Of a DNA stretch of 64,000 nt, positions 3,481-37,618 are shown piece after piece. The notes under the pieces are model-generated. The model was not told where the DNA came from and did no database searches. It saw nothing but the letters and a program-made list of their open reading frames with translations. How positions within the stretch are numbered: position 1 is the first letter of the stretch; each line of letters opens with the position of its first letter. The stretch lies in the sequence record NC_019410.1, one strand, 5' to 3'. A program made the position numbers and the translations under genes.

Positions 3481-3548
3481 CTCCTTCTGTCGTTGTGTCG
3501 ACATAAGCTCTAGCCGTGGTTTTCCGGCCTGTCAACACACAACCGCCA
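3481..3548 (-). promoter_or_regulatory. phage promoter cassette (TGGC / TTGACA / TAGAGC / CGACACAAC / RBS)
   Basis: Minus strand TGGC-N9-TTGACA(3535-3530)-N17-TAGAGC-N6-CGACACAAC...GAAGGAGG. Confidence 0.8.
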
Positions 3549-3553
3549 AGGGT

Positions 3554-3586
3554 CAAAAGAAAACCGCCGCCCCGAAGGACGGCGGT
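3554..3586 (-). terminator. Rho-independent terminator
   Basis: ACCGCCGTCC-TTCG-GGGCGGCGGT followed by TTTCTTTT on minus strand. Confidence 0.85.
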
Positions 3587-3612
3587 CATGACAGAGCATG
3601 TCAGGAGGGACG

Positions 3613-5736
3613 TCAGACGTCCAGAGCGAAGGCCGGCGGGGAGACGTCCGGCTTCTGAATGATGAATCCCCGATCCAAGAGGGGCGGGAAGACCTGCTTG
3701 AGCACGCCGGCCGCGACCCCGGCTTCCTCGGCGATTTCGGCGAACGTGAAGGCCTCGCGCTGGCCGGCGCTGGCGACAAACAGATCGTTGAGCGCCAGGA
3801 TCACCGCGCCCGCCGGACTGATCTCGTAGGCCATGTCGAAATTCGGGTCTTCTGACAGCCGCAGCAGGCCTTCCGCCTCCAGGTTCGCGATGAGCGCCTT
3901 GAGTTGGTCAACCTTGACCGCGCCAAGATGGGTTTGGATTTCCCAGGGCGCCGCCGGCTCCTCGGCGCGCACGGCTTGCAGCGTCGCGATCAAGGCGATC
4001 GCCGGCATGGCCCGCACGATCATCTCGTCGCCAACCGTCAGGTCCGGGGCGTTGACCAGCAGGTCATTGATCACCGCGTCGCCGTGGGTCTCGACATAGG
4101 TCCGCAGCCGCTTGAGGGCGACCAGGAAATCGTCCTTGGTGATCGGCTCGATGCGGAAGGTCAGGAGCGGGTCGGTCGGAATCTCCGAGAAGTAGGCCCG
4201 ACCCCGGTGGCTCCAGCCCTCGACCACATGCAGGAAGAGATCGATCGGCATGGCGACGGCGCCAAAGCCCAGTCGCGCATCGTCCGTCGCCTCCTCGACC
4301 TGCGCCAAGGCGTTGTCGATCGCTTCGAGCGTGAAGCCCCCGACAAGGCCGTTTTCCGCCGCGTCCAGCACGTTGGCCGCTTCTTCGGTGCCGAGCCCTT
4401 CGACGACCATTTCCGAGGCCTCCTGAGCCGTTTCCTGCGGCAGGGCGTCGGCGAGCTTGCTCATCGCCTCGGCGACGCCGCTCGTGTCGAGTTCCAGCTT
4501 CAGGGCCAGCTTCTCGGGACGCGCCGAGTAGGGCACGCCCTGGATCACCACGGCGCCCAGGTCGCCGACGACGCGCTTGGTCACTTCCAGATAGGCGTAG
4601 CGCGAGGCGGCGTTGAGCAGCGACAGCCGTTCGAAGACGATCTGCTGCTCCTGCTCGCGCGACAGGATGCCCGTCTCCAGGATGAATAGCGGCTCGGAGC
4701 CATCCAGCGGGGGCTTGGCCTCGCCGTCGTCTTCCGGAAGGTCCTCGTCGAAATCGGCGCCGCTGATCGGCTCGCTCTCCGGCGGGGTGAAGCGGATGCC
4801 CGGCTCGCGGGGCGGTTCGGCGGGAGTGGCGTCGTCGAGAGGCATGTCGGTCCTTTGAGGCTTGGAGGTGATGAAGAGCGTGGTGAGATCGACGTCCCAG
4901 ACCCCGCGCCCGTCGGTGAAGAGCGCCATGAAGGTCCCCAGGCGCGCATCCCAGCGGATGGTCTGGATCACGCCGTTGACGTCGCCATAGACGCCGGTCG
5001 CCCCCACGAGTTCATCGCGCAGGACCTCCGCATGGTCGTGGCACTCACCAAGCGTCGCCGGACGCACGGCGTGGAACGGGTATTGCTGATAGGCGCCCGG
5101 CGGCGAGACGAGGCGGACATTGACGTAGAGCGGCCCCAGATGGGTGTGGGCGTCGCGCAGGAAGCCGACCACGGTCTCCCCGTCGTTCTGGGTCGCCACC
5201 ACGGGCATGCCGGCGCAGTTAGCCGTCAGGACCGCCGGATAGTCCTGGGGATAGGCCACGGCGTACAGGTGGAGATGATCACCCCGGCGCTGGGCCTTCC
5301 AGTCGGCGACACACCAAGCCGCCACCCGCGTGGCCCCGAACTCCGGCGTCTCCTCGATCAAGACGCCGCCGTCCGGAAGGTCCGCCTGCCCGACGTAAGG
5401 AACGACCTCGCTATGGCTGACGCTCCAGGCGGGCTTGGGAAATTGCGGGGTGATCATGAGCTTCTCGGTGAAGGTGAGATTGATGGCGTCGGCGTAGTGA
5501 ACATACGGGCCGACCGGGGTGGTCCATGGCGGATCACCCTTGCGGATGTCCGACAGCGGCACCGCGACGTGCCTGCCGTTGGGCTGGACGATGTCGGCCA
5601 GGATGCGCGGCGGCTGGTGCATCAGGGTCACGACGTGCCCCTCGCCCGCCTCGAAGGTGCGGCTCTTGGGCCACCAGACCTTGGACCCGGTCCAGTGGAT
5701 CGACTGGATGACGAGGTCTTGTTCGGTCCCGATCAT
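3613..5736 (-). CDS. large hypothetical protein (707 aa) with probable C-terminal winged-helix domains
   Basis: ORF track; C-terminal KALIANLEAEGLLRL...YEISPAG and FTFAEIAEEAGV...LLDRGFIIQ. Confidence 0.75.
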   Translation of the reverse strand: MIGTEQDLVIQSIHWTGSKVWWPKSRTFEAGEGHVVTLMHQPPRILADIVQPNGRHVAVPLSDIRKGDPPWTTPVGPYVHYADAINLTFTEKLMITPQFPKPAWSVSHSEVVPYVGQADLPDGGVLIEETPEFGATRVAAWCVADWKAQRRGDHLHLYAVAYPQDYPAVLTANCAGMPVVATQNDGETVVGFLRDAHTHLGPLYVNVRLVSPPGAYQQYPFHAVRPATLGECHDHAEVLRDELVGATGVYGDVNGVIQTIRWDARLGTFMALFTDGRGVWDVDLTTLFITSKPQRTDMPLDDATPAEPPREPGIRFTPPESEPISGADFDEDLPEDDGEAKPPLDGSEPLFILETGILSREQEQQIVFERLSLLNAASRYAYLEVTKRVVGDLGAVVIQGVPYSARPEKLALKLELDTSGVAEAMSKLADALPQETAQEASEMVVEGLGTEEAANVLDAAENGLVGGFTLEAIDNALAQVEEATDDARLGFGAVAMPIDLFLHVVEGWSHRGRAYFSEIPTDPLLTFRIEPITKDDFLVALKRLRTYVETHGDAVINDLLVNAPDLTVGDEMIVRAMPAIALIATLQAVRAEEPAAPWEIQTHLGAVKVDQLKALIANLEAEGLLRLSEDPNFDMAYEISPAGAVILALNDLFVASAGQREAFTFAEIAEEAGVAAGVLKQVFPPLLDRGFIIQKPDVSPPAFALDV

Positions 5737-6158
5737 GCGGACGCCGCCGCGCCGGCCGGCGTCAAGCCGTAGATGGTGGGGCCTCGCGGCGACTTTCCGA
5801 GCGCGACCACTTCCAGATAGCCCATATTGTTCAAAGCCTTGGCTGTTTCATGATCGGGGTGATCGTTGAAGACGTTGAGGCGCCCGCCCTCGCCCATCGC
5901 CTGGGCGGCGCGCAGAAGACTCGCCTCGGCTTCGGTCAGGGTGACCAGGGCGACGTCCTCCAGCGCCACGTCGATCACGCAGGTCTGACCCTGATGAACG
6001 AACTCGATGATCGCCAGCCGGCGATAGGTCCCCGGCAGGACCGCGAGACAGACGCCTCGGACCTCGACCTTCTGGCGGGCGGTGATCGGGAGATAGAGGC
6101 TCGTCTTGACGGCCTTGCCCTTGAGGGACAGATGCTCGTGCGTCGCCAGCGGGATCAT
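5733..6158 (-). CDS. hypothetical protein (141 aa), wHTH-like C-terminus
   Basis: AKALNNMGYLEV...IYGLTPAG; ATGA coupling. Confidence 0.7.
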   Translation of the reverse strand: MIPLATHEHLSLKGKAVKTSLYLPITARQKVEVRGVCLAVLPGTYRRLAIIEFVHQGQTCVIDVALEDVALVTLTEAEASLLRAAQAMGEGGRLNVFNDHPDHETAKALNNMGYLEVVALGKSPRGPTIYGLTPAGAAASA

Positions 6159-6948: not shown

Positions 6949-7170
6949 GCTTGCACTACTCCTTGATCTCGACGCTCTTGGGCGGATTGGGATGAGGAAC
7001 GAAGACCAGGGCCACGTCCTGACCGCCGGTATAGCGCGTGCGTCGGCTATAGAGCCAGCCGCCTTCCACCGCCAACCGCTCGGTCACCTGACCATCGGCT
7101 TCGTCGATCTTTTCCCACTTGGACTTCTTAGCCATCTTCCCCTCGAATTTGGCGGCACCCTAGAGGAGCG

Positions 7171-7219
7171 TTCGAGTGTTGACAAGCACCAATGTCGCTG
7201 GCTTTCGAGTGTTGACAAG
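7171..7219 (+). repeat. 16-bp direct repeat TTCGAGTGTTGACAAG x2
   Basis: Copies at 7171-7186 and 7204-7219, each with TTGACA. Confidence 0.85.
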
Positions 7220-7265
7220 TCCGGTGCTCGTCTATAGGGGAGACCGGGACGACAACGAAAGGAGC
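7199..7265 (+). promoter_or_regulatory. phage promoter cassette
   Basis: TGGC-N9-TTGACA(7212)-N17-TAGGGG-N6-GGACGACAAC-GAAAGGAG. Confidence 0.8.
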
Positions 7266-7270
7266 CTGCC

Positions 7271-7579
7271 ATGCGCTATGTGCTCGACTATGCCGACGAC
7301 CGGGACAACCCGGTCTATACCGATTTCCAGGCCGGCGACCGCAAGGCGGCCATCGCCAAGGCCAAGCGCCTGCTCGCCAAGGCGATCAAGACCGTCGATT
7401 TCTCGCTCCACGGGGCCTACATCTTCGTCGATCCGACGGGCGTCGCCCGCGACGTCGACGACATGATCCCGTTCGGCATGCTGAGCACGATGGCCTACGC
7501 CAGCATCGTCACCCCGTCGATGATCTCGTTCGACGACCGCGACGCCAAGGCGGCGATCGCCGCGAGGCTCGCCCAATGA
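7271..7579 (+). CDS. hypothetical protein (102 aa)
   Basis: AAAGGAG RBS; first gene after promoter. Confidence 0.75.
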   Translation: MRYVLDYADDRDNPVYTDFQAGDRKAAIAKAKRLLAKAIKTVDFSLHGAYIFVDPTGVARDVDDMIPFGMLSTMAYASIVTPSMISFDDRDAKAAIAARLAQ

Positions 7580-7788
7580 TGGATCGTCAGGACGTCCAGC
7601 CCGGCTTCATCTATCGCGGCGGCAAGAACGGAACCCTGCGTCAGATCGTGAGCTATGGGGCGACCGAGGATTTCGTCTGCTGGGCCAATCCCCACGACCG
7701 CCTGCCCTACGGCGGCTTCATCTCCACCATCTGCACGTCCAGGACGTCGTTCGCCCGCTGGGCCGACAAGATCGAGGAAGAGGTCTGA
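7576..7788 (+). CDS. hypothetical protein (70 aa)
   Basis: ATGA coupling. Confidence 0.7.
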   Translation: MMDRQDVQPGFIYRGGKNGTLRQIVSYGATEDFVCWANPHDRLPYGGFISTICTSRTSFARWADKIEEEV

Positions 7789-8069
7789 TGCTGTACAGCA
7801 TGATCACGGGCGACTCTCCCGAAGACGAATTCGCCGACTATGAGTTCGCCAACGGGACCCAGGTCCACAATTCTCAAGCCGAGGACGATGGAACCTTCCG
7901 TCGCATGATCACCACGCCCAAGGGGATCAACGTCACCTTCTGGAACGTGATGCCCGTCGAGATCGTGGGCGAGGTCGCGGCCGAACTCGATCGGGTCGCG
8001 GCGGTCAACTTCGAGCAGGGCAAGCGTGCGAAGGCAGGTGAAATCATTCGCGTGTTGGGGCTCGGATGA
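7788..8069 (+). CDS. hypothetical protein (93 aa)
   Basis: TGATG coupling. Confidence 0.7.
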   Translation: MLYSMITGDSPEDEFADYEFANGTQVHNSQAEDDGTFRRMITTPKGINVTFWNVMPVEIVGEVAAELDRVAAVNFEQGKRAKAGEIIRVLGLG

Positions 8070-8338
8070 ACACCTTCTTCCTTCGGCAGACCAAACGGGA
8101 CGAGCAGGGTCGACGCTACTTTGAGTTCGTCGATCCTGACCTGACCCAGCGCCTCTATGTCCGCAAGCCGCCGGACGACTGGTCCGAGGGCTTCCCGATC
8201 GTCCTGGAGGACTTCGTCGATGGCAAGCCCGCCGGCTCCATCATCTGCCCGGCCGGGAAGAAGCGGGGGCATGGCTTCGCGGCCTTCTTCAAGGCCAACC
8301 CTAAGGATTTCCGCAAGCTCAAGAAAGGTCGCCTATGA
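8066..8338 (+). CDS. hypothetical protein (90 aa)
   Basis: ATGA coupling. Confidence 0.7.
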   Translation: MNTFFLRQTKRDEQGRRYFEFVDPDLTQRLYVRKPPDDWSEGFPIVLEDFVDGKPAGSIICPAGKKRGHGFAAFFKANPKDFRKLKKGRL

Positions 8339-8592
8339 GGATTCCCCAGCCCGTCGAGTTCACCGTGGCCGACCTCATCGCCCACCTTGCGACCCTGCCC
8401 CAGGACGCCAAGGTCGGCGTGCGCGGCGGGTTCGGGGGCTTCCGGCCGCTCGACGAGATCGCCCCGATCGAACTCGTCACCTTCTACGGCGAGACCGACG
8501 TCGACCGCATGACGCTGGCGACCGCCGACCCCATCGCCATCAACTGGAAGGGCAAGCGCGGCGAGCCCTTCACGGCCATCATTCTCGACTAG
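8335..8592 (+). CDS. hypothetical protein (85 aa)
   Basis: ATGA coupling; TVADLIAHLATLPQDAKV. Confidence 0.7.
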   Translation: MRIPQPVEFTVADLIAHLATLPQDAKVGVRGGFGGFRPLDEIAPIELVTFYGETDVDRMTLATADPIAINWKGKRGEPFTAIILD

Positions 8593-8600
8593 GAGGACCC

Positions 8601-8840
8601 ATGACCAACCGTGTCTGGATTGAACTCGAACCGTCCGCGTCCGAGGGCCACGCCCGCGCCGCCGCCGCGTCGGCCATGCTGAAGCGCCTGGGTGTCGACG
8701 TCGGCGTCCACAAGCCGGTGTTCTGGCACGAGCGCAATGAGCGCTACTGCTTCACGCTCGACGCCTCGGGCGTCTACGTCGAGGCCGAGGACCACGGCCA
8801 CTGGTACAACCTCGATTTCCTGGCGGGCGCCGATGTCTGA
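8601..8840 (+). CDS. hypothetical protein (79 aa)
   Basis: AGGAGG RBS before ATG 8601 within ORF 8157..8840. Confidence 0.7.
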   Translation: MTNRVWIELEPSASEGHARAAAASAMLKRLGVDVGVHKPVFWHERNERYCFTLDASGVYVEAEDHGHWYNLDFLAGADV

Positions 8841-9228
8841 GGTCTTCCCGCCGATCCGCCCCCGCGAGGCCAGGGACGAGGAAATCCACGGCTTCGTCGT
8901 CCGCTACGGCTGGTTCTGGAACGTGACCCTGCTGAACGGCACGATCCTGGCCTTCGATCCCGACGATGTCGACCCCTGCCGCTACGGCGTGACGGGCAAG
9001 GACGACTTCCGCAACCTCGCCGGCGCGCCCGAGACGATCGCGGCCTACGAGTGCGTCCAGGGCTGGCACGCCAAGGCCAAGCACCTCTCGGGCTGGACCG
9101 AACGTCACGACGACCGGCTCGAAGCCCTGCGGACGGCTTATCGCCGCCTGGAGGAGCAGCGCGAGCGCAACAGCCGCGCCCTGGAGGAGCACGGCGGCAT
9201 CTTCAAGTTTCTGGAAGGTCAGGACTGA
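8833..9228 (+). CDS. hypothetical protein (131 aa)
   Basis: ORF 8692..9228 trimmed to MSEVFPP. Confidence 0.7.
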   Translation: MSEVFPPIRPREARDEEIHGFVVRYGWFWNVTLLNGTILAFDPDDVDPCRYGVTGKDDFRNLAGAPETIAAYECVQGWHAKAKHLSGWTERHDDRLEALRTAYRRLEEQRERNSRALEEHGGIFKFLEGQD

Positions 9229-9470
9229 TGCAGAGGACCCTCCATTCGACCGGCCAGGAACTTTCGGTCAAGTTCAAGTTCCCGAGTGAAAACCTGACCT
9301 TGACCGTGCATGCCGAACAGGACAGCCCGATGGCGTTCCTTTGGGTCGAAGGCCGTTCGGTCGACTATTTCGAGAAGCTCCTGAGCTTCGAGCCGGCCGA
9401 TCTCGATCTCTTGATCGCCACCCTGTCCGAGGCGCGCAAGATGATCCGCGAGCGCGAGCCGCAGGACTGA
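9228..9470 (+). CDS. hypothetical protein (80 aa)
   Basis: TGATG coupling; MQRTLHS. Confidence 0.65.
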   Translation: MQRTLHSTGQELSVKFKFPSENLTLTVHAEQDSPMAFLWVEGRSVDYFEKLLSFEPADLDLLIATLSEARKMIREREPQD

Positions 9471-9471
9471 C

Positions 9472-9726
9472 ATGCTGACCAAGGACGAGATCACCTTCGC
9501 GGGCCTGATCAAGGCCATGGAGGACGCCCGACGCACCGCCAAGGCGGCGGGCGATCTCGTCAGCACGGCCGAGATCGACCGCTGGTTCAAGGAACACGCG
9601 CCGATCATCCGGGAGGTCCGCGACAAGGCCGAGGCCGACGAATTCGACGCTGGCGCGAGAGTGTTGACAGCCTCTGAGGAAGGGGCTAAAGACACCCTCG
9701 ACGACAGCGAAAGGAGCCTGCCTTGA
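9472..9726 (+). CDS. hypothetical protein (84 aa)
   Basis: ORF track; 3' end overlaps next promoter. Confidence 0.65.
   Translation: MLTKDEITFAGLIKAMEDARRTAKAAGDLVSTAEIDRWFKEHAPIIREVRDKAEADEFDAGARVLTASEEGAKDTLDDSERSLP
9651..9716 (+). promoter_or_regulatory. phage promoter cassette
   Basis: TGGC-N9-TTGACA(9664)-N17-TAAAGA-N6-CGACGACAGC-GAAAGGAG. Confidence 0.8.
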
Positions 9727-10742: not shown

Positions 10743-10927
10743 CTATCACCGCCCACGCAGAATCCGTCCTGGCGCTCCAGGCGCAGGCCGCCGACACCCT
10801 CAATCGGGTGATCGGAGAGCGCAACGCCGCCACGGGCGCGAAGAAAACGCGCCTGCGCCGCCTGACCCTGATCCTTGAAGACGTGATGGGCGCCTGCAAC
10901 GACGCCGTGGAGGAGATGCGCCGGTGA
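10739..10927 (+). CDS. hypothetical protein (62 aa)
   Basis: TTGA coupling. Confidence 0.6.
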   Translation: MTITAHAESVLALQAQAADTLNRVIGERNAATGAKKTRLRRLTLILEDVMGACNDAVEEMRR

Positions 10928-11319
10928 TCTTCAGTTCCAAAACCCAGCCCCACTGCCGCTGCTGCGCCAAGCCGATCAAGAAGCACACCCGCCGCCACTA
11001 TTTCGGCTCCAGGGAAGCCAAGGACAACGGCTGGTCGCTCGACCGGATCGAGACCCCGATGTCGGAGGACGAACTGCGTCGGCTGGTGAACGGTCATATC
11101 GTCTCGTTCGCCTGGAGCCACGACGTCACCTACGACGCCAACTACAAGGCCGTGCGGAAGAAGACCCACATCGCCTGGGCCAACGTCTGGGACGGCGAGA
11201 CCTACGAGGACGGTTATTTCTGCACCCTGCGATGCGCCGCCGCGTTCGGGAGCATGGTCGCCGAGCACTATCCCGATATCCACACCCAGGCCTACGCAGA
11301 CTTCAAGGGCAAGCGATGA
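10924..11319 (+). CDS. hypothetical Cys-rich protein (131 aa)
   Basis: CRCCAK...YFCTLRCA. Confidence 0.7.
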   Translation: MIFSSKTQPHCRCCAKPIKKHTRRHYFGSREAKDNGWSLDRIETPMSEDELRRLVNGHIVSFAWSHDVTYDANYKAVRKKTHIAWANVWDGETYEDGYFCTLRCAAAFGSMVAEHYPDIHTQAYADFKGKR

Positions 11320-12280: not shown

Positions 12281-12281
12281 C

Positions 12282-12776: not shown

Positions 12777-12784
12777 GTCTTTCC

Positions 12785-12850
12785 TGGCGCGAAAGTGTTG
12801 ACAGCCTGAAGGGACTCCTCTACACCCACGCTCGACGACAACGAGAGGAG
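12785..12850 (+). promoter_or_regulatory. phage promoter cassette
   Basis: TGGC-N9-TTGACA(12798)-N17-TACACC-N6-CGACGACAAC-GAGAGGAG. Confidence 0.8.
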
Positions 12851-12855
12851 TTCCC

Positions 12856-14616
12856 ATGGCCGAGACCATGTCCCTGAGTTTCCGGATCGAAGGCGCCGCT
12901 CTGGTGGAGCGGGCGCGCGATCGCGTCATCGAAGGTAACTGGGAGCACGGCCTGCGCATCCTGGTCGAGGGCCTGCACGGCATGTCCTACGAACTCGCGA
13001 TCGACATCCTGCTTGGCAAGCACACCCTGGGCGGCTGGTCCTCGGACCCCGAGGGCGTCTATCTCACCGACCAGGACCCGGAGGACGAGACTTTCAAGCG
13101 CTACAAGGAAACCCTCGACTACCAGTTCGCCGGCGTCTTCAAGCTGGACGACGGCCGGATCATGCGCCCCTACGCGGTGGTCGACAGCTTCTCCAAGATC
13201 GACTTCGACTCTAGGGTCCGCTTCCTGCGGCTGGCCCAAGGCTCGGACCCGGTGTTCTCGCGCCCCAAGCGCTATCACGACCCCCGCGCCGAGATCAACG
13301 GCGAGGAGATCGACTGGGCCTATCGCGCCCTGCACTACGCCGACGAGCCGACCCAGGACATCGTCCGTCTGGTCCGCATGGAGGGCTTCCACCCCACGAT
13401 CCGCGCGGCGGTCCTGTTCAAGGAAGTCCGCGACTATCCCAAGCTCCTGCTCCCGAAGGTCGAGACCGACGCCCAGAAGGCCGTCGACGTGGCGATCAAG
13501 GCCCAGCGTGGTCTCTCCAAGCGCGGGCACGTCTACGAGTATGGCGCTGGTCAGGACTTCGACAAGGAGCACTACAAGACCACCATGGGGATCGATCAGG
13601 TCCCCACCGCCTGGACCGTGCGCAACCCGAAATACGTCGATCCCGACGCCAAGTTCGTGAAGGACACCCTGGCCGAGATCGACGGCGACAAGCGCTCGGC
13701 GCCGGCCGGTGATTACGCCGGCGCCATGAACCGGATGATCAAGGATGAGATGGACGGCGGCATGGACATCAGCGCGGCCGTCGCCATGACCCAGGCCAAG
13801 ATGGCGCTGCTGGGCGGCATGGCCGAGGACCCCGAGCAGCGCCTGCGGGCGATCAACGACGCCTACGCCGCCAAGTACGAGAAGGCCGAGGGCCGCAGCG
13901 TCGAGGAGTACCGCAAGGCCATCATCGCCCAGGCCGGCGATGATTTCTTTGATCTCGCGTACACGGATGTGAACGGCAAGGACGTCGTCCTGAAGGTCCC
14001 GACCGCGCCGTTCGAGCAATGGGCGCTCTGGCGCACGGCCGGCTCCCACCTCGCCAAGCCCTGGAAGCGGGTGACCTACACCGGCTTCAAGACGTTCGGC
14101 GATGATCCCTATCACACCGACTGGGTGCTGGGCGCTGGGCTCAATCCTGAGGATTGGCCGATCATCGAGGCCGACAACCCGCCGCTCCACAAGGCCGCCT
14201 GGGACAAGCGCTTCCGGCTGGCCGAGGAGAAGCTGGGCGGCAACATGCGCGTCCTGCTCGGCAAGGGCTTCGTGACCGGCAAGATCGTGATGCTCAAGCC
14301 GGGCGAGGCCCTGTCACCGGGTGAGATCGGCGTGATCCGCAACGCCGGCCCCGACTACGTCCAGGCCGCCCAGAGCGCGATCGAGCACAACACCGCCTTG
14401 ATCTGCGAGAACGGCGGCAGCGTCGCCCACCTCGTGGTCGAGTACCTGGACAAGCCCCTGCGCCTGACCCGGATCGAGAACGCGCGCAAGATTTTCAAGG
14501 ACGGCATGACCGTCTACCTCGACTTTGACAAGTCGACGCGAGAGATCGCCAAGGGTGGCCTGGGGCCGAGCCCTGCCGATCTTGGCCTCGACACGGAATG
14601 GGAGATTTTCGAATGA
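12856..14616 (+). CDS. 586-aa protein with C-terminal PEP-utiliser mobile (phospho-histidine swivel) domain
   Basis: GKGFVTG...LSPGEIGV...LICENGGSVAHLVVE...FKDGMTVYLD matches the G.EG...EPGEILV...VTERGG..SHAAI...IKDGD.V.VD pattern. Confidence 0.7.
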   Translation: MAETMSLSFRIEGAALVERARDRVIEGNWEHGLRILVEGLHGMSYELAIDILLGKHTLGGWSSDPEGVYLTDQDPEDETFKRYKETLDYQFAGVFKLDDGRIMRPYAVVDSFSKIDFDSRVRFLRLAQGSDPVFSRPKRYHDPRAEINGEEIDWAYRALHYADEPTQDIVRLVRMEGFHPTIRAAVLFKEVRDYPKLLLPKVETDAQKAVDVAIKAQRGLSKRGHVYEYGAGQDFDKEHYKTTMGIDQVPTAWTVRNPKYVDPDAKFVKDTLAEIDGDKRSAPAGDYAGAMNRMIKDEMDGGMDISAAVAMTQAKMALLGGMAEDPEQRLRAINDAYAAKYEKAEGRSVEEYRKAIIAQAGDDFFDLAYTDVNGKDVVLKVPTAPFEQWALWRTAGSHLAKPWKRVTYTGFKTFGDDPYHTDWVLGAGLNPEDWPIIEADNPPLHKAAWDKRFRLAEEKLGGNMRVLLGKGFVTGKIVMLKPGEALSPGEIGVIRNAGPDYVQAAQSAIEHNTALICENGGSVAHLVVEYLDKPLRLTRIENARKIFKDGMTVYLDFDKSTREIAKGGLGPSPADLGLDTEWEIFE

Positions 14617-16652: not shown

Positions 16653-16655
16653 GCG

Positions 16656-16707
16656 TTGACAACACTCTCGCGCCAACATAGAACCACCCTCGACGACAAC
16701 GAGGAGG
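16656..16707 (+). promoter_or_regulatory. phage promoter cassette (28-bp identical core, copy 1)
   Basis: TTGACAACACTCTCGCGCCAACATAGAA then N6-CGACGACAAC-GAGGAGG. Confidence 0.85.
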
Positions 16708-16712
16708 CTTCG

Positions 16713-17096
16713 ATGAAGCTCGCGACCCAAGACCGCACCGACCCGCGCCTGAACGCGCGCTATCGCCTCGCCAAGGCGGTGTTCTACTATGGCGGCCCGC
16801 ACGAGTACCCGATCCACCTGAACGACTGGTGGAACGAGGTGACGCCGGCCGACGTCGAGGACCGCATCTCCGAACTCTGCCGCGAACTCTCCAAGCTGTC
16901 GGGTCAGACCCTGGCGCCGGCGACCTTCTACGAGCGGATGAAGCTGGGCTTCGTCGACCTCCCGGAAGTGAAGGACGAGGACTTCGCCACCCTGTCGGAG
17001 ACGACCCGCAACAACCTGCTCGCCATGCAGGACCGCTTCTCGGTCCACGGGAGCGGCTTCATGCTCTACTGGAACATCGTCAAAGAGGAGGCCTGA
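16713..17096 (+). CDS. hypothetical protein (127 aa)
   Basis: ATG 16713 after GAGGAGG. Confidence 0.75.
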   Translation: MKLATQDRTDPRLNARYRLAKAVFYYGGPHEYPIHLNDWWNEVTPADVEDRISELCRELSKLSGQTLAPATFYERMKLGFVDLPEVKDEDFATLSETTRNNLLAMQDRFSVHGSGFMLYWNIVKEEA

Positions 17097-17099
17097 GCC

Positions 17100-17725: not shown

Positions 17726-17726
17726 C

Positions 17727-18155: not shown

Positions 18156-18158
18156 TCC

Positions 18159-18224
18159 TGGCGTTCTTGTGTTGACAAGGCCAGCGCCGCTGGCCTAGAA
18201 CGTCGTGGACGACAACAGGAGGGA
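18159..18224 (+). promoter_or_regulatory. phage promoter cassette
   Basis: TGGC-N9-TTGACA(18172)-N18-TAGAAC-N5-GGACGACAAC-AGGAGGG. Confidence 0.8.
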
Positions 18225-18226
18225 CC

Positions 18227-18583
18227 ATGCCGCTCTACGACTTTCCGACCGGACCGACCACGATGGCGGACATCGAGGCGTTCGTCGCCGGCGCCCAGGC
18301 GGTGGTGACCGCCCAACTGGCCAAGGCCTTTCCCGGCGTGTCCGCGCCGGTCCTGGAGATCGCGCCGGTTCACCCGAGCAGCCAGTTCGCCAAGATCGTC
18401 GCGGTCGACGCCAGCCAGCGCTCGGCCTGGGCGTTCGTCCGACTGGAGAACGGCCTGATCTACAAGCCCTCGTCGTGGAAGGTGCCGGCCAAGCATGCGC
18501 GTGGCACGATCCACACCGCCGCGCACGGCGCCGAGTACGTCGACTGGACCGGCCCGCGCTACGTCAAGGACCTGCGTCGATGA
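18227..18583 (+). CDS. phage hypothetical protein (118 aa)
   Basis: SAWAFV...GLIYKPSSWKVPAKHARGTI resembles a motif common in phage early proteins. Confidence 0.75.
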   Translation: MPLYDFPTGPTTMADIEAFVAGAQAVVTAQLAKAFPGVSAPVLEIAPVHPSSQFAKIVAVDASQRSAWAFVRLENGLIYKPSSWKVPAKHARGTIHTAAHGAEYVDWTGPRYVKDLRR

Positions 18584-25868: not shown

Positions 25869-25934
25869 TGGCGTTAGAACGTTGACAGCCTCGGCGTGAT
25901 GTCATAAAAGCCTCCTCGACGACAACGAGGAGGG
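25869..25934 (+). promoter_or_regulatory. phage promoter cassette
   Basis: TGGC-N9-TTGACA(25882)-N17-TAAAAG-N6-CGACGACAAC-GAGGAGGG. Confidence 0.8.
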
Positions 25935-25938
25935 CCAC

Positions 25939-26358
25939 ATGGCTTACGCAATTCCGGACCTGAGCACGTTCACGTTCCACGATCCCAAGGTCGAACGGTT
26001 CGCCAAGGCGATGATCTCGACGATCGAGACCGCCCAGACCATCCTCACGGCCTTCGCCAACGATCTCGCCGACAATCCTCTTCAGGCGTTCGAGCATAGC
26101 TACGGCGCCAAGATGGCCGCCGCCCACAGGGACGTCGCCAAGGGGCTGCTCAACGAAGTCCTCGACGCGCTGCTGCACGGTCAGGACAAGACCTGGGCCT
26201 ACATCGGCCAGGACCTGCGCGAGCGGCTGATGTATCGCGTGATCTACGCGGCCTCGAACCCGCCGCGCTCGACCAACGTCGAAGGCAACGACATGGCCCG
26301 CTTCGTCCTGCGCGCCGAGGCCGACATGCTCGACCGCATGACCAAGAGCCGCTTCTGA
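25939..26358 (+). CDS. hypothetical protein (139 aa)
   Basis: Strong RBS. Confidence 0.75.
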   Translation: MAYAIPDLSTFTFHDPKVERFAKAMISTIETAQTILTAFANDLADNPLQAFEHSYGAKMAAAHRDVAKGLLNEVLDALLHGQDKTWAYIGQDLRERLMYRVIYAASNPPRSTNVEGNDMARFVLRAEADMLDRMTKSRF

Positions 26359-27271: not shown

Positions 27272-27336
27272 TGGCGTTCAAGTGTTGCCAAAGCTGATCT
27301 GATCAGCTAGAACCCTCGCCGACGACAACGAGGAGG
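27272..27336 (+). promoter_or_regulatory. phage promoter cassette
   Basis: TGGC-N9-TTGCCA(27285)-N17-TAGAAC-N6-CGACGACAAC-GAGGAGG. Confidence 0.75.
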
Positions 27337-27340
27337 CCCC

Positions 27341-27535
27341 ATGCCGCACCTGAGCAAGACGCCGTTCGACTTCGACTTCACCAGTGACGCTTTGGCGGCA
27401 ACGCTGGAATTCGAGCGCAACACGACCGAGTTCTACCGCTACGAGACAGTCTTCACATCCGGTCGTGCGGCAACTCACGTTCTCGTCATGGAAGAAGACG
27501 GGAATTTCGTCGGCTTCGTCTCGGGTGAAGCCTGA
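27341..27535 (+). CDS. hypothetical protein (64 aa), atypical codon usage
   Basis: Strong RBS; more A/T-ending codons than neighbours. Confidence 0.65.
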   Translation: MPHLSKTPFDFDFTSDALAATLEFERNTTEFYRYETVFTSGRAATHVLVMEEDGNFVGFVSGEA

Positions 27536-28496: not shown

Positions 28497-28538
28497 TGGC
28501 TTCAGTGTGTTGACGGCGCGTCGCTCGCCCGCTAAGAA
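28497..28538 (+). promoter_or_regulatory. promoter (TGGC class, no GACGACAAC box)
   Basis: TGGC-N9-TTGACG(28510)-N17-TAAGAA. Confidence 0.65.
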
Positions 28539-28596
28539 GGGCTGACGGTCACGCTCTGGCTGCATGAATTTTCAATCCGAAAGAGGCCTTAAGTAC

Positions 28597-30627
28597 ATGG
28601 ATTTCCACGTCTTTAAGACGGCCGTCGCCAAGCAGTGGGCCGCGATGACCAAGGATGACGCGACCCTGTTCCGCGTCGACGTCGACAAGGACCTCCTGTG
28701 GTCGACCTATCTGGGGGCGTTCCCGGCCGGGACCGATCCGATCTTCCGCGAGCGCTCCGAGCACGACTGCTCGTGCTGCCGCAACTTCATCCGCAACGCC
28801 GGCGACGCCGTGGCGGTGGTGAACGGCCAGATCGTCACGATCTGGGATGGCAAAATCGAGGGCGAGCCGGCCTACCAGCAAGTCGCCGCCACCCTGGCGG
28901 CCCTGGTCCGCTCGCGCCCGGTGCGCGACATCTTCCTGCACGACCAGAAGACCATCGGGACCGACAAGAACGTCGAGACCATGCTGGGCGGCGACATCAC
29001 CTGGAACCACTTCTTCGTCAATGTCCCCTCGCGCTTCGTCAAGAAGGGCAAGGACATCCCGACCGCGCTCCACATCCCGCGCACCGCGCAGGAGACGCTT
29101 CTGCGCGCCGTGACCGAGATCACCGACGAGGCGATCGACACGGTGCTGGACCTGATCGCCCAGAACGCGCTCTATCGCGGGGCCGAGCATAAGTCGGCGG
29201 TGGTGGCGTTCCAGAAGGCCAAGAAGACCTTCGAGGGCCTGTCGGCCGCCGACAAGGCGCTGAAGGCCTGGGTCAACGTCACCAACGGCGAAATCTGGGG
29301 CTCGGTCTCCGGCATCCGGAGCACGGTGATCGGCTCGCTGCTGGTCGACCTGTCGGCTGACGTCGACCTGGAGGACGCGGTCAAGAAGTTCGAGGCCAAG
29401 GTCGCGCCGCACAACTACAAGCGCACGACCGCCCTGGTGACCAAGAAGCAGATCGAGAACGCCAAGAAGACGATCTCCGACCTGGGCCTGACTTCGGCCC
29501 TGGAGCGGCGCTACGCCGTCCTCAAGGACGTGTCGATCAACGACGTGCTGTTCGCCGACCGCGACGCCAAGTCGGTGATGAACGATGTCTTCGACGATCT
29601 GGCCGCCGACGTCGCCGAGAAGGCCAAGTCCTACGACAAGGTCGAGGAGGTCTCGATCGACAAGTTCCTGTCCGACATCCTCCCGAGGGTGTCGAGCGTC
29701 GAGGCCCTGGTCGAGAACCGCCTGACGAGCAATTTCGTCAGCCTGATCGCGCCGGTCGATCCGACCGCCGGCTCCCTCTTCAAGTGGGGGAACAACTTCT
29801 CCTGGTCCTATGCCGGGGAGGTGGCGGACTCGATCAAGGCCCGCGTCAAGGCGGCCGGCGGCAACGTCACCGGCGATCTCTGCTGCCGTCTGGCGTGGTT
29901 CAACTATGACGACCTCGACTTCCACATGAAGGAGCCGGGCGGTAACCTGATCTACTTCCGCCAGAAGTCCTCGCCCTACACGGGCGGGCGCCTCGACGTC
30001 GACATGAACGCCGGCGGGGGCCATACCCGCGAGCCGGTCGAGAACATCTTCTACGGCGATCGCCGGACGATGAAGGAAGGCGTCTACGAACTGATGGTCC
30101 ATCAGTTCAGCAAGCGCGAGTCCAGCAACGTCGGCTTCGAGGTGGAGATCGACTACCTGGGCTCGATCACCCGCTACGCCTACACCACGGCCCTGCGCCA
30201 GGAGCAGGTCGTCAAGGTGGCGCAGTTCAAGTACAGCCACGCGCGCGGCATCGAGTTCATCTCCTCGCTCCCGGCCTCGTCGGCGAGCAAGGACGTCTGG
30301 GGCGTCAAGACCGAGACCTTCCGCAGGGTCAACGTCATCATGCTCTCGCCCAACCACTGGGAAGGCGAGCCGGGCGTGGGGAACAAGCACTGGTTCTTCA
30401 TGCTGGACGGGGGCGTCAACGAGGACGGCGCTCGCGGCTTCTACAACGAGTTCCTGAAGGATAGCCTCACGCCCCACCGTCGCGTCTTCGAGATGCTGGG
30501 GTCCAAGCTGAAGCCCGCGCCGGCGGCTGAACAACTCTCCGGCCTGGGCTTCTCCTCGACCAAGCGCGACGAACTCGTCGTGCGCGTCAAGGGGGCCTTC
30601 ACCCGTACCCTCAAGATCAAATTCTAA
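28597..30627 (+). CDS. large conserved phage protein (~676 aa), C-terminal YfaP/DUF2135-like beta-sandwich
   Basis: AAGAGG RBS before ATG 28597; HDCSCC near N-term; RLAWFNYDDLDFHMKEP...LDVDMNAG...PVENI...GVYELMVHQF. Confidence 0.75.
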   Translation: MDFHVFKTAVAKQWAAMTKDDATLFRVDVDKDLLWSTYLGAFPAGTDPIFRERSEHDCSCCRNFIRNAGDAVAVVNGQIVTIWDGKIEGEPAYQQVAATLAALVRSRPVRDIFLHDQKTIGTDKNVETMLGGDITWNHFFVNVPSRFVKKGKDIPTALHIPRTAQETLLRAVTEITDEAIDTVLDLIAQNALYRGAEHKSAVVAFQKAKKTFEGLSAADKALKAWVNVTNGEIWGSVSGIRSTVIGSLLVDLSADVDLEDAVKKFEAKVAPHNYKRTTALVTKKQIENAKKTISDLGLTSALERRYAVLKDVSINDVLFADRDAKSVMNDVFDDLAADVAEKAKSYDKVEEVSIDKFLSDILPRVSSVEALVENRLTSNFVSLIAPVDPTAGSLFKWGNNFSWSYAGEVADSIKARVKAAGGNVTGDLCCRLAWFNYDDLDFHMKEPGGNLIYFRQKSSPYTGGRLDVDMNAGGGHTREPVENIFYGDRRTMKEGVYELMVHQFSKRESSNVGFEVEIDYLGSITRYAYTTALRQEQVVKVAQFKYSHARGIEFISSLPASSASKDVWGVKTETFRRVNVIMLSPNHWEGEPGVGNKHWFFMLDGGVNEDGARGFYNEFLKDSLTPHRRVFEMLGSKLKPAPAAEQLSGLGFSSTKRDELVVRVKGAFTRTLKIKF

Positions 30628-31094: not shown

Positions 31095-31148
31095 TTGACA
31101 ACACTCTCGCGCCAACATAGAAGGGCCTCCGACGACAACGCCGGAGGC
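31095..31148 (+). promoter_or_regulatory. phage promoter cassette (28-bp identical core, copy 2)
   Basis: TTGACAACACTCTCGCGCCAACATAGAA-N6-CGACGACAAC-GCCGGAGG. Confidence 0.85.
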
Positions 31149-31155
31149 CCTTTTC

Positions 31156-31464
31156 ATGTCCGAGATTAGCTGCACCACGCCGGTTCCGAATAATCCGCGC
31201 TACGTGATTGTTACCGTCGATGGTCGGAAATATCGTTTCTCAGCGGCTGAGCGACGCCGACGCGGCGATGTCGTGATCAACTATGTGCTCGGAAGTCGAA
31301 AGGGCAAATGGGGCCAGTCGACCGATTGGGTCTCCCTGCCCCAAGGCCCCAAGCGCCGGACGGTGGTCTCCTCGGCCGCCGAGTTCCTCGCTTCGTCCCC
31401 AGACATTCCGGCTGAAGAACAGTCGGTCTGGGCCGGCGTCGCCTTTGCGAACCTCGCCCAATGA
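31156..31464 (+). CDS. hypothetical protein (102 aa), atypical codon usage
   Basis: GGAGG RBS; many A/T-ending codons. Confidence 0.6.
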   Translation: MSEISCTTPVPNNPRYVIVTVDGRKYRFSAAERRRRGDVVINYVLGSRKGKWGQSTDWVSLPQGPKRRTVVSSAAEFLASSPDIPAEEQSVWAGVAFANLAQ

Positions 31465-33428: not shown

Positions 33429-33727
33429 GCGACCACGATGCCTGCCTGACCAACTGGGTCCTCTGCGACGCGCCCGGCGGCGGGCTGGTGGTGATCGGCG
33501 AAATCATGGCCGACAAGCGCGGACGCTGGCCGGACGGGCGGCTCATCCATACCTCGCTCCTCCAGGCCAAGGCCGAGGCGGTGGCGCCGGGCGCGGTGGT
33601 CGCCACGCTCAACTCCCGCTACATCCTCGGGCGCAAGGCCGAGGAGATCACCGTCCGTCACTTCGTCGGGGCGATGCTCGCCCGCGTCGCGATCAGACCG
33701 CTTGACAACACTCTCGCGCCAACATAG
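33425..33727 (+). CDS. hypothetical protein (100 aa)
   Basis: ATGA coupling; GEI...RWPDGRLIHTS...TLNSRYILG. Confidence 0.65.
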   Translation: MSDHDACLTNWVLCDAPGGGLVVIGEIMADKRGRWPDGRLIHTSLLQAKAEAVAPGAVVATLNSRYILGRKAEEITVRHFVGAMLARVAIRPLDNTLAPT

Positions 33728-33790
33728 AAGGGTCCTCGACGACAACGGCTGTCCGAAATTTGTAGACGGATTTCGGACATAGAGGAGCAA
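33702..33790 (+). promoter_or_regulatory. phage promoter cassette (28-bp identical core, copy 3) with hairpin in leader
   Basis: Core 33702-33729; GACGACAAC 33738; TGTCCGAAAT-N10-ATTTCGGACA 33750-33779; AGAGGAG RBS. Confidence 0.85.
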
Positions 33791-33794
33791 CCCG

Positions 33795-34178
33795 ATGGCC
33801 CAGCGCCTGAAGATCAAGGAAGTCGTGGTGGCGCAGCAGGACGCTGTCTACCACTGGCGTGGTGAGGAAGGCGACGAGTATCAGGTCATGAGCCTCGTCC
33901 ACGTCCAGACCCTGGACGGCCGCTGGTTCCTGATGCCGGCCATGCGCCCCTACACCCGCGCCGAGGAGGCCGCGTTCGACGAGGCCTGCGGCGAAATCCT
34001 GTTCGGGATGAAGACCCGCTACTCGGACCCGCAGGCCTTCGCCGCCATCGTCCGCGCCGCCGGCTCGATCGATCCTGATCTGTGGGTCGAGTATCAGCCC
34101 GACACCCGCACCCTGGAAGAGAAGTTCCACGACGACTGGGTCGAGGAACAGTTCGACCGCCAACGCTTCGCCGCCTGA
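33795..34178 (+). CDS. hypothetical protein (127 aa)
   Basis: Strong RBS. Confidence 0.75.
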   Translation: MAQRLKIKEVVVAQQDAVYHWRGEEGDEYQVMSLVHVQTLDGRWFLMPAMRPYTRAEEAAFDEACGEILFGMKTRYSDPQAFAAIVRAAGSIDPDLWVEYQPDTRTLEEKFHDDWVEEQFDRQRFAA

Positions 34179-36155: not shown

Positions 36156-36159
36156 TCGT

Positions 36160-36224
36160 TGGCTCCGATGTGTTGACAAGAAGCGGCGGCCTCCTGTAGA
36201 AGCATCCTCGACGACAACAGGAGG
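36160..36224 (+). promoter_or_regulatory. phage promoter cassette
   Basis: TGGC-N9-TTGACA(36173)-N18-TAGAAG-N6-CGACGACAAC-AGGAGG. Confidence 0.8.
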
Positions 36225-36231
36225 CCCCGCC

Positions 36232-36726
36232 TTGACCGACACCATCGCGCCTGGAACCGAGTTCGAAGACGCCGTCACCCTCGGCGTCGAGATCATCCAG
36301 TCCAAGCCGCCGCACCTGACCGCCCGTGAGGCGGTCGAGAAGTTCCAACACCAGCCGGACGAGTTCCGCCTGCTGGTGACCCGCTTCAACAAGGCGACCG
36401 CCGCCTTGCCGGCGGTGGTCCACGGCCACCAGTTGCAGTCGACCTGCGCCAAGTGGGTGCTCGACTCGGCCCAGCGGTTGATCGACCTGCCGTTCGAGAC
36501 GATCGAGCAGCGCGTGGCGTTCTACGCCAAGCAGATGACGCTCCCGGCCTATGGCTACCTGATGGATCGCTACAAGGACCGGCTCGACGCCAAGATCGCC
36601 ATCATCCGGGCCTGCCTGGAAGACCGCAACCACGTCGGCGCCAGCTACAACCTGGGCATCCTGGAAGAGGACTTCCAGGAGATGGTCGACCGTCACGACG
36701 ATCTGGTCTCGGACGGCTACCCTTGA
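36232..36726 (+). CDS. hypothetical protein (164 aa)
   Basis: TTG start after AGGAGG. Confidence 0.7.
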   Translation: MTDTIAPGTEFEDAVTLGVEIIQSKPPHLTAREAVEKFQHQPDEFRLLVTRFNKATAALPAVVHGHQLQSTCAKWVLDSAQRLIDLPFETIEQRVAFYAKQMTLPAYGYLMDRYKDRLDAKIAIIRACLEDRNHVGASYNLGILEEDFQEMVDRHDDLVSDGYP

Positions 36727-36798
36727 TGGGCGCTTGCAGCCGTCACAACTCCAGCCTAGCTTCCTCGCGCCGCGCTGTTGCGGTCATGAGGATTCGAA

Positions 36799-37059
36799 AT
36801 GGACAGGCTGAAAGTCAAGCTCTTCGCCAAGGGGATTCATACCTCGGCCGAGGCCCTGGTCGATGCGATCGCGGCGCTTCCGGAGGGGCCGGAGAAGGAT
36901 GCGGTGGTCGCGGCCGAGAAGCAGTTGCACGCGCGGCTGAACTGGGGCGCGGCGAAGGCCGGCGAGTTCTTCGGGGACGAGTCGATCTCGCTCCTGGCGC
37001 GGCGCCGCACTGGCGGCGAGGACAAGCCGGACGCCCCCGAGGTTCCGCCCGGCGGCTGA
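36799..37059 (+). CDS. small helical protein with Pro/Gly-rich tail (86 aa)
   Basis: GAGG RBS; ends TGGEDKPDAPEVPPGG. Confidence 0.7.
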   Translation: MDRLKVKLFAKGIHTSAEALVDAIAALPEGPEKDAVVAAEKQLHARLNWGAAKAGEFFGDESISLLARRRTGGEDKPDAPEVPPGG

Positions 37060-37069
37060 CGGGTGCGTC

Positions 37070-37594
37070 ATGGGCCTGACGGGCTGCACCTTTGCAGTCC
37101 TGACGGCCGGCTCGGTCGCCTATGCGATCGACCGTGGCGGCAAGGCGCTGAAGCTCAGCGCCTTCCTGCTGCTGGCGTCCTGGGCGTTCTCGGTCACCCT
37201 GGGCCAGACCCTCAACGCGGGCATGAAGCCCTATGTCTACGCCTGGGTCGACGCCCTGTTCGCCGGCGCGATGGGGATATTGATCTCCGCCCGGCTCCAG
37301 CGCTGGCGGGTCGCCCTCTTCACCCTGGCGATCGCCCAGATGGGCCTCCACCTGATCATGATCGGGGTCTGGGATTTCTCGCTGCACGCGCGGCGCCTCC
37401 ACATCCTAGCCCTCAACCTGACCTATGGCCTGGAACTCTTCGTCCTGACGATCGGGGCGGCGACCTATCGCGCCGAGGCCGAGGACGACATGCCGGCGGT
37501 GATCGAGGTCCAGCACCGCTTGATCGGGACCGACGACGGCCGCGTTCTCGATTGGCTTGAATGTGTTGACAAAGCCAGAGAGCCCATCCTATAA
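37070..37594 (+). CDS. integral membrane protein (174 aa, ~5 TM)
   Basis: Successive hydrophobic segments; AYAIDRGG...LLLASW...VDAL...W motif. Confidence 0.75.
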   Translation: MGLTGCTFAVLTAGSVAYAIDRGGKALKLSAFLLLASWAFSVTLGQTLNAGMKPYVYAWVDALFAGAMGILISARLQRWRVALFTLAIAQMGLHLIMIGVWDFSLHARRLHILALNLTYGLELFVLTIGAATYRAEAEDDMPAVIEVQHRLIGTDDGRVLDWLECVDKAREPIL

Positions 37595-37618
37595 GCTCCC
37601 TCGACGACAACGAGGAGG
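37553..37618 (+). promoter_or_regulatory. phage promoter cassette
   Basis: TGGC-N9-TTGACA(37566)-N18-TATAAG-N6-CGACGACAAC-GAGGAGG. Confidence 0.8.

Follow-up and report, generated by a model that had tools for sequence, protein, structure and literature searches.

A repeated RpoD-type promoter cassette with an upstream module and a predicted start box in the genome of Caulobacter phage CcrKarma

The 64,000-nucleotide stretch considered here (the window; sequence record NC_019410.1) belongs to Caulobacter phage CcrKarma (JX100811.1; Karma below) and covers record positions 157829-221828, a window position being the record position minus 157828. The assignment comes from the 12 kb at 7000-19000, which match Karma record positions 164828-176828 with 100% identity. 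The window reaches the right end of the Karma genome, the final 10.25 kb of which is a terminal repeat. Nearly all of the genes between 3481 and 37618 are annotated as "hypothetical protein", and in this region we find a repeated cassette of promoter and leader. It is composed of a 13-bp module, TGGC-N5-GTG (TGGCGNGAGAGTG), abutting a -35 hexamer, a -10 hexamer and a box of 9 nucleotides (nt), GACGACAAC, which starts where transcription start (+1) is predicted and is better conserved than the -10 itself. Ten copies of the box are found in the window, all on the plus strand (7248, 12834, 16692, 18208, 25918, 27321, 31131, 33738, 36210 and 37603), against 0.54 expected and a maximum of 3 in shuffled sequences; all ten positions listed for it in a preliminary description of this DNA were recovered. 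The combination TGGC-N9-TTGACA is present in 8 copies (3530 on the minus strand, 7199, 9651, 12785, 18159, 25869, 36160 and 37553) versus 0.05 expected. Two further sites, 27285 and 28510, have TGGC at -13 from the hexamer and one-base -35 variants, TTGCCA and TTGACG, respectively. The ten promoters originally credited with TGGC nine nucleotides before the -35 are thus confirmed, with a correction to two of the hexamers. The TAGC variant pointed out at 45058 is likewise real and has no box. As for the two variants of the box that had been noted, the one at 9700 (GACGACAGC) has a single mismatch, while near 3492 there is something, namely GTCGACACA at 3494-3502, a weak match with three mismatches.

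The preliminary list overlooked both the promoters at 16656, 31095 and 33702, which carry the module inverted in the spacer, and the extent of the family, which goes far beyond the window. Scanning of the entire Karma genome returned 19 exact boxes, 18 of which sit 35-37 nt after the first base of TTGACA, and about 28 promoters with the module, the box or both. The cassettes are co-directional with the genes downstream, being on the minus strand at 122-165 kb and on the plus strand at 165-204 kb. Nearly all of them lie within 113-203 kb; outside this interval only record positions 53071 and 81919 have TGGC, and there is hardly any other TTGACA-N17-TAnA promoter. The repeated cassette is a real, conserved promoter class.

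The hexamers are those of the host. TTGACA is the -35 at 26 of the 28 Karma sites, the remaining two being TTGCCA and TTGACG, and the commonest -10 sequences are TAGAAG and TAGAAC, which conform to the Caulobacter type (GC)TAgAAg/c. Both hexamers fit the consensus of Caulobacter RpoD, TTGaCgS / GCtANAWC, as quoted in PMC8144410. An E. coli-style promoter scan detected none of the cassettes, because their -10 ends in G/C and not in T. Housekeeping promoters of Caulobacter RpoD (sigma73) have the same -35 and -10 hexamers and the same G/C instead of T at the last -10 position; the phage cassette differs from them in adding a fixed 13-bp upstream block and a fixed 9-nt start box. In other words, the claim that the cassette includes elements foreign to a standard sigma70 promoter is borne out, these elements being added to RpoD-type hexamers. 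The geometry was determined for the 22 Karma promoters whose box has two mismatches at most. The spacer is 17 nt in 18 of them and 18 nt in the other 4. The gap between the -10 and the box ranges over 6-8 nt and is 6-7 nt in 19 of the 22, in agreement with the earlier placement of the box at about the predicted +1. From the start of the box to the start codon there are 19-25 nt in 21 promoters and 57 nt in the single exception. We predict that RpoD holoenzyme transcribes the cassettes from about 7 nt after the -10.

TGGC had been thought to be a free-standing element at about -47. This view has to be given up, since TGGC is the outer end of the 13-bp module TGGCGNGAGAGTG that is fused to the -35. 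In the module, whose commonest full form is TGGCGCGAGAGTG, information content is concentrated in TGGC (-48 to -45), in a purine followed by A/T (-40, -39) and in GTG (-38 to -36). The three overlooked promoters have no module upstream; instead, their spacers read ACACTCTCGCGCCAACA, the reverse complement of the module. We refer to such promoters as class B and to those with the upstream copy as class A. There are three class B promoters in Karma and five in Rogue, a phage of the genus Poindextervirus, all without an upstream copy, and the two locations are mutually exclusive in the promoters of both phages. The C/T polymorphism of the upstream copies also occurs in the flipped ones. Between orthologues, class B spacers are identical at 16-17 of 17 nt, and their upstream flanks have diverged. 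The promoter in front of the gene that starts with ATGGCTTACGCAATTCC differs in class between the two phages, being A in Karma and B in Rogue. Taken together, these comparisons speak for one and the same constraint on flipped and upstream copies. The sequence GAGTGTTG-A-CAACACTC is a perfect palindrome containing the -35, and for this reason class A and class B are mirror images with the A at -32 as their centre. Near 7180 the same palindromic core serves the minus-strand promoter of the operon that includes a GcrA-like gene; read directly, the promoter of this gp235-gp234 operon uses a near-palindromic -35 core and has neither TGGC nor box.

The box was said to be usually fused to the ribosome-binding site. 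It does lie 0-4 nt from the Shine-Dalgarno (SD) sequence in the usual cassette; in long leaders, though, it is left at the promoter and not at the ribosome-binding site. At 33738 in the window, a 57-nt leader separates the box, which remains beside the -10, from the ribosome-binding site, and in two long-leader promoters of phage Colossus the box likewise stays beside the promoter. Because it keeps close to the -10 in such cases, the box belongs to the promoter and its predicted start site. Leaders starting at the box are predicted to be unstructured (0 to -2.6 kcal/mol). The discriminator is usually CCTC, complementary to the SD sequence GAGG, so that read-through RNA could hide its SD while promoter-born RNA cannot; sequestration of the SD in read-through RNA by CCUC-GAGG pairing is therefore a possibility. 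A selected hairpin of this kind was tried as an explanation and rejected. Comparison of own with swapped arms gave p = 0.21 for stem length, and for folding energy p = 0.043, which became 0.40 after removal of two terminator-type sites. At 31123-31150 an annotated rho-independent terminator (GGGCCTCCG...CGGAGGCCC-TTTT) is nested in the gp290 promoter, with its 5' arm between the -10 and the box and with the box in its loop. At about 134055 of the Karma record (minus strand) the box again occupies the loop of a hairpin that resembles a terminator and is followed by TTTT. Since RNA born at the box is without the 5' arm, transcripts arriving from upstream should stop at the nested terminator, whereas box-born ones should read on. 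A different structure is found in the gp296 leader, where TGTCCGAAAT...ATTTCGGACA form a hairpin at 33747-33790 (-19.4 kcal/mol, z = -2.9) that is also present in Rogue and phiCbK; no Rfam family was matched in the window, this hairpin included.

The cassettes of the window and the elements associated with them are collected in Table 1. The perfect palindromes in the spacers of the gp262 and gp284 promoters may be further operator sites. At gp322, an SD-like GGAGG directly follows the -10 (45082-45097) and the start codon is only 8 nt beyond the -10, so that the mRNA may be leaderless; the Rogue orthologue of gp322 has the full box and a normal leader instead. The cassettes at 9651-9726 and 37553-37594 overlap the annotated 3' ends of gp244 and gp304, and therefore the gp245 and gp305 promoters share bases with coding sequence.

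Table 1. Cassettes and associated promoter elements in the window (window positions)
Feature	Position	Strand	Elements and remarks
Class A cassette, gp230-gp229-gp228 operon	3473..3548	-	module TGGCGGTTGTGTG 3536-3548; -35 TTGACA 3530-3535; -10 TAGAGC 3507-3512; degenerate box 3494-3502; GTG start 3473-3475
Divergent promoter, gp235 to GcrA-like (gp234) operon	7157..7185	-	TTGTCA 7185-7180; spacer ACACTCGAACGCTCCTC; -10 TAGGGT 7162-7157
Second GAGTG-TTGACA copy near gp236 cassette	7174-7184		
Class A cassette, gp236	7199..7273	+	module 7199-7211; -35 7212-7217; -10 TAGGGG 7235-7240; box 7248-7256; ATG 7271
Class A cassette, gp245	9651..9725	+	consensus module TGGCGCGAGAGTG; box GACGACAGC 9700-9708; TTG start 9723
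Class A cassette, gp251	12785..12858	+	
Class B cassette, gp258	16656..16715	+	inverted module CACTCTCGCGCCA 16663-16675 within 17-nt spacer; -10 TAGAAC; box 16692-16700
Class A cassette, gp262	18159..18229	+	spacer palindrome GGCCAGCGCCGCTGGCC (18178-18195)
Class A cassette, gp280	25869..25941	+	orthologous promoter of Rogue is class B
Class A cassette, gp284	27272..27343	+	-35 TTGCCA; spacer palindrome AGCTGATCTGATCAGCT (27291-27308)
Class A cassette, gp288	28497..28599	+	-35 TTGACG; degenerate box GACGGTCAC; 53-nt leader
Class B cassette, gp290	31095..31158	+	inverted module 31102-31114; box 31131-31139
Class B cassette, gp296	33702..33797	+	inverted module 33709-33721; box 33738-33746; 57-nt leader with stable hairpin
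Class A cassette, gp302	36160..36234	+	
Class A cassette, gp305	37553..37626	+	overlaps annotated 3' end of gp304
Variant cassette, gp322	45045..45097	+	module TAGCGCGATTGTG; -35 TTGACA; -10 TAGACC; no box; ATG 45095

The consensus is kept in relatives, that is in Rogue, phiCbK, Bajun and other Brevundimonas phages. phiCbK has the same cassette set as Karma, and Rogue has about 30 cassettes of both classes. Alignment of 12 orthologous promoter pairs of Karma and Rogue yields a sharp footprint: identity is about 35% upstream of -48, 58-83% in the module and 92-100% in the -35. The module, taken as a 20-mer, is conserved at 19-20 of 20 nt in Rogue and in the Brevundimonas phages. The 20-mer of the gp245 cassette, cTGGCGCGAGAGTGTTGACA, recurs without mismatch in Kabachok, Domovoi, Kikimora, Papperlapapp and Gurke, and as a 19-20-mer it is found in Bajun, Kabachok, Kikimora and Gurke. 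In Bajun, whose host Brevundimonas is another genus, the promoters read TGGC/TGTC-N5-GTG-TTGACA with a GACGAC box, and Kabachok mixes the TGGC type with a TTTACA type. Colossus and PW (Colossusvirus) lack TGGC and have GAG-TTGACA-GNCGGC or TTGACR-N9-GTTTCTTTACA with the box GACGATCA. BL9 (Bertelyvirus; CcrBL9 190001-240000) has TRCA-AGAAAR-CTG-TTGACA in the same 13-nt slot. An extended -10, (G/A)TT(T/C)CTTTACA, is common to Colossus and Kabachok. Thus, all lineages compared have the host-type hexamers in common, and the slot beside the -35 differs among lineages that share one host. ACGA at +34 to +44 from the start of the -35 was found in 21 of 29 promoters in Karma, 22 of 25 in Rogue, 15 of 17 in Bajun and 20 of 36 in Colossus. 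Among the accessory elements, the predicted GACGA start box has the widest distribution, exceeding that of the module. Beyond phages, the full cassette was found in none of the representative genomes searched, which cover 185,579 bacterial and archaeal species. A scan of viral contigs for GTGTTGACA...GACGACAAC gave genuine hits only in Karma, Rogue and BL10; nine metagenomic matches, which have no TGGC and no -10, were dismissed as chance.

A clue to the time of expression comes from gp228 (window 1838-2215, minus strand). It starts with MADDKT, matching the start of tgrL (gp216) in the cloning primer of the PMC10688885 supplement, and is, judged by this match, the homologue of phiCbK TgrL. 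It occupies the third position in the operon headed by the cassette at 3535 on the minus strand, and phiCbK has the same cassette and gene order upstream of gp218-216. tgrL is highly expressed, early, with a peak at 15 min (PMC10688885). To call the whole cassette class "early" is only an inference, because the timing rests on this one gene.

In our interpretation, which we hold with as much confidence as doubt, the cassette is the consensus of Karma's main promoter class for the host RpoD (sigma73) polymerase, provided with a predicted start box and an operator-like module. The cassettes would head short operons of small, probably early genes in two divergent arms at about 113-203 kb. Transcripts are predicted to start at the first G or A of GACGACAAC, and the predicted leader would be fixed, free of U, unstructured and 19-25 nt long, running directly into the SD. 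The module would be a duplex-DNA site for a putative sequence-specific protein on or beside the -35, each promoter having a single module that is placed upstream or, in inverted form, in the spacer. Such a site might more likely be an operator tuning or shutting off the promoter class than a contact for an activator or for the C-terminal domain of the RNA polymerase alpha subunit (alpha-CTD). We favour the operator because one copy on either side seems to suffice and because the flipped copy occupies DNA that RNA polymerase has to bind. The box might serve as an element of the start site and 5' leader, with a reader that all these phages have in common, candidates being host RNA polymerase, the ribosome or a core phage protein; a common reader is proposed because the GACGA core recurs across the subfamily irrespective of the module upstream. 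Sequence alone favours none of the three roles suggested for the box in the preliminary description, namely an initially transcribed signal, an RNA-protein site and a translational enhancer. Compared with the preliminary description, the interpretation as RpoD-type promoters with two extra elements stands, and the parts concerning a free TGGC, alpha-CTD and GcrA are weakened.

Several points count against this interpretation. The +1 at the box is a prediction from sequence, the module-binding protein is putative, and the operator role has geometry as its sole basis. At class A promoters, a perfect -35 with an adjacent site also fits a class II activator. BL9 is without the GACGA box, which is therefore not universal. 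Bajun (record 33174) and Kabachok (L034:20015) each have one two-armed promoter, and the unequal spacings of 3 and 6 nt would suit a hairpin better than a rigid dimer site. Finally, T-rich runs lie just upstream of TGGC in many promoters, and an upstream-promoter (UP) element-like contribution from them is possible. The UP element of E. coli, an alpha-CTD site, similarly occupies -60 to -38; the A+T fraction at -56 to -52 is 0.5-0.64 versus a background of 0.34, and BL9 has an A-rich slot (AGAAAR). From -48 to -36, however, the module is G/C-rich, so that TGGCGNGAGAGTG does not resemble an A/T-rich UP element. Moreover, an UP element acts only upstream of the -35, whereas class B promoters have the inverted module in the spacer and nothing upstream.

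The alternatives differ mainly in what is thought to read the two extra elements. The boldest extension of the operator idea is that a phage switch protein reads a half-palindromic operator around the -35 (GAGTGTTG-A-CAACACTC, extended to TGGC/GCCA), one arm being enough, so that about 30 early promoters are placed under one control and the GACGA box is a second, independent handle; we consider it rather unlikely. A contact of alpha-CTD or an activator with TGGC at about -47, with the phage GcrA-like protein as candidate and the promoters as the delayed class that it switches on, is in our opinion unlikely, although a number of observations speak for it. gp234 is a full-length GcrA-like protein (Pfam PF07750), and the distribution of its gene fits that of the module in several lineages: the gene is present in Shapirovirus, Poindextervirus and Bajun, and was not found in Colossus, PW and BL9. 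In addition, TGGC and box are absent from the GcrA operon's own promoter, the GAGTG of the module is one base off GANTC, and the T-rich runs before TGGC are UP-element-like. On the other hand, the match between gene and module amounts to one evolutionary contrast, and tblastn with two GcrA queries found no gene in Kabachok, which has TGGC-N9-TTGAC promoters. GANTC is also not enriched, with 7 occurrences in 28 windows of 110 nt versus 4.5 expected and with only 5 promoters having any, whereas, according to PMC4647560, activation by GcrA takes place mainly at methylated GANTC and the protein makes contact with sigma domain 2 rather than with far upstream DNA. Hence, though the cassettes resemble GcrA/CcrM-dependent Caulobacter promoters (PMC4647560) in being RpoD promoters of a system that encodes a GcrA-family protein, they differ from these in lacking enrichment of methylatable GANTC, and the lack of enrichment together with the Kabachok case weakens the GcrA idea. 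For alpha-CTD or any upstream activator, the main difficulty is class B, in which the inverted module lies inside the spacer, where such a contact is impossible. Promoters with a near-consensus -35, spacer and -10, furthermore, seldom need an activator.

A post-initiation role of the box, either as a 5' RNA operator (T4 RegA/RegB-like) or as a -10-like sigma pause element (lambda PR'-like), seems quite improbable to us. The exact 9-mer is kept in 19 promoters, which is beyond the need of open-complex contacts, and it adjoins the SD; box positions 4-9, GACAAC, agree with TANAWC, the RpoD -10 pattern, at 4 of the 5 positions that it specifies, and the CCUC-GAGG pairing would be open to read-through RNA and closed to promoter-born RNA. 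The lambda PR' promoter has a promoter-proximal sigma-dependent pause element, AACGAT at +1 to +6, and thus likewise a conserved ACGA-containing element at this position after a discriminator of 6-7 nt. In Karma, however, there are about 30 such promoters versus one, and no Q-type antiterminator is known. Genes resembling those of Q, RegA or RegB were not found either; the resemblance to a -10 is statistically weak and poorer in Colossus (GACGATCA), the arms do not covary once the two terminator-type sites are dropped, and in long leaders the box stays with the promoter and not with the SD. We regard as very improbable that conservation reflects mostly common descent of a spreading promoter unit which mediates gene shuffling, TGGC and the box having little function of their own. 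This explanation draws on the homology breakpoints. Homology between Karma and phiCbK ends at 27336 and 31158, each being the 3' end of a cassette, and that between Karma and Rogue breaks at 18156, 31158 and 36153. The breaks toward phiCbK fall at the cassette 3' edge because genes unlike phiCbK directly follow the cassettes (gp284-gp285 at 27336-27925 and gp290 at 31158-31461); phiCbK sequence diverges right after the box of the gp284 promoter, and gp290 is a Karma-only gene. Three class B copies have 28 identical nt in common, and the promoter class switches at an orthologous site. Breakpoints at gene borders are expected anyway, however, and only some coincide with cassettes, other breaks being away from them, so that the link between cassettes and recombination borders is no more than suggestive. 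Within one genome the spacers and N5 vary freely, with TGGC, GTG and the box fixed; the 20-mer of the module is kept among phages whose proteins are only 33-43% identical; and the footprint in orthologous pairs is sharp.

Which protein might read the module was considered for several known regulators. TgrL, a phage XRE repressor, was rejected: with the matrix of PMC10688885 S2 Table, no offset gives a mean score above +1.4 bits, and hits of at least 8 bits occur in 4 of 28 promoter windows versus 4.3 expected, with no fixed position and no enrichment. The winged-helix protein gp198 was also set aside, as the search gave no match in phiCbK, which has cassettes nevertheless. gp110, with a LexA-like helix-turn-helix, is a candidate; it is found in every lineage, the Brevundimonas phages included, at 30-82% identity, diverging with the lineages, and nothing ties it to the module. 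The promoter of gp110 itself, at Karma record position 81919 (minus strand; gene L003:30988-31788), has a TGGC module with TTGCCA and no clear -10 or box. Control by CtrA can be discounted, since full TTAA-N7-TTAA boxes all lie in the terminal repeat (record 2481, 8802, 9867 and the repeat copies) and none in a cassette. A sigma54 promoter (TGGCAC-N5-TTGC) is likewise excluded: the cassette has 9 nt between TGGC and TTGACA and GA for GC, and a -10 follows at 17 nt. Sigma54 promoters have their GG and GC dinucleotides a helical turn apart and possess neither a -35 nor a -10; the spacing of their elements is about 2 nt shorter than the TGGC-TTGACA distance.

The cassette belongs to the class of strong early phage promoters with conserved flanking blocks, within which the module in either orientation about the -35 and the subfamily-wide start box are unusual. 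Gentz and Bujard are said to have shown in 1985 that strong early promoters of coliphage T5 (and also of T7 and T4) have conserved blocks outside the hexamers. These early promoters, too, come in many copies, are used by unmodified host polymerase and are conserved upstream of the -35 and in the initially transcribed region. The upstream block of the T5 type, however, is A/T-rich and UP-like, whereas the Karma module is G/C-rich and invertible into the spacer, and the Karma start box is an exact 9-mer. Promoter-early stem-loop (PeSL) cassettes of T4-type phages, reportedly described by Arbiol et al. in 2010, are similarly repeated early-promoter units before small ORFan genes and at recombination junctions, some with a hairpin. 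Their sequences are unrelated to the Karma cassettes, which have the hairpin at only two sites and show no sign of excision or mobility. We searched papers on CbK-like phages for early promoters, start sites, transcriptomes and the box sequence, most papers in subscription journals being outside the search, and found no description of the consensus; the word "promoter" appears a single time in the phiCbK genome paper, which offers no motif. The full consensus, suspected from the beginning to be new, is thus apparently undescribed.

In the Caulobacter model system phiCbK serves as the standard phage, and its transcription programme is without mapped promoters. The consensus yields a genome-wide operon map for roughly half of the genes, as well as strong, compact promoter-and-leader parts for Caulobacter engineering. 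It also offers two sequence handles for finding early-expression factors, the 19-mer beside the -35 and the 9-mer at the predicted +1. The flipped module and the differing slot sequences on the same host point to a regulator-like reader that has changed between phage lineages. If reading by a switch protein were true, it would represent an operator logic embedded in the -35 that is not described for the shut-off of early phage genes.

Promoters of a second class, GTCGTGAATC-TTGACA, also occur in Karma, 18 of them when three mismatches or fewer are allowed in the upstream 10-mer. Two of these sites are in the window (48485-48500 and 46554-46569), and others are at record positions 19595, 22538, 25619, 30589, 33335, 47507, 56905, 71936, 78496, 94152(-), 101836(-), 107819(-) and 116266. 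They occur mostly in structural, replication and terminase regions and have no TAnAAn -10 at 17 nt. They often have an upstream inverted partner (TTCACGAC-N7-GTCGTGAA) and, downstream, GTTAACC(AT), which is similar to a CtrA half-site. The variant box CACGAC of Karma resembles the half-site TCACGAC of this class, and we considered whether the box might be a half-site for its activator. This idea was ruled out by the lack of co-variation, since in Colossus the palindrome has changed to CTGGCAC/GTGCCAG and the box is still GACGA. The second class of Colossus has the same layout with this other palindrome (ACTGGCAC-N12-GTGCCAG-AATC-TTGACA). The second class looks like middle or late promoters with a site for a dimeric activator.

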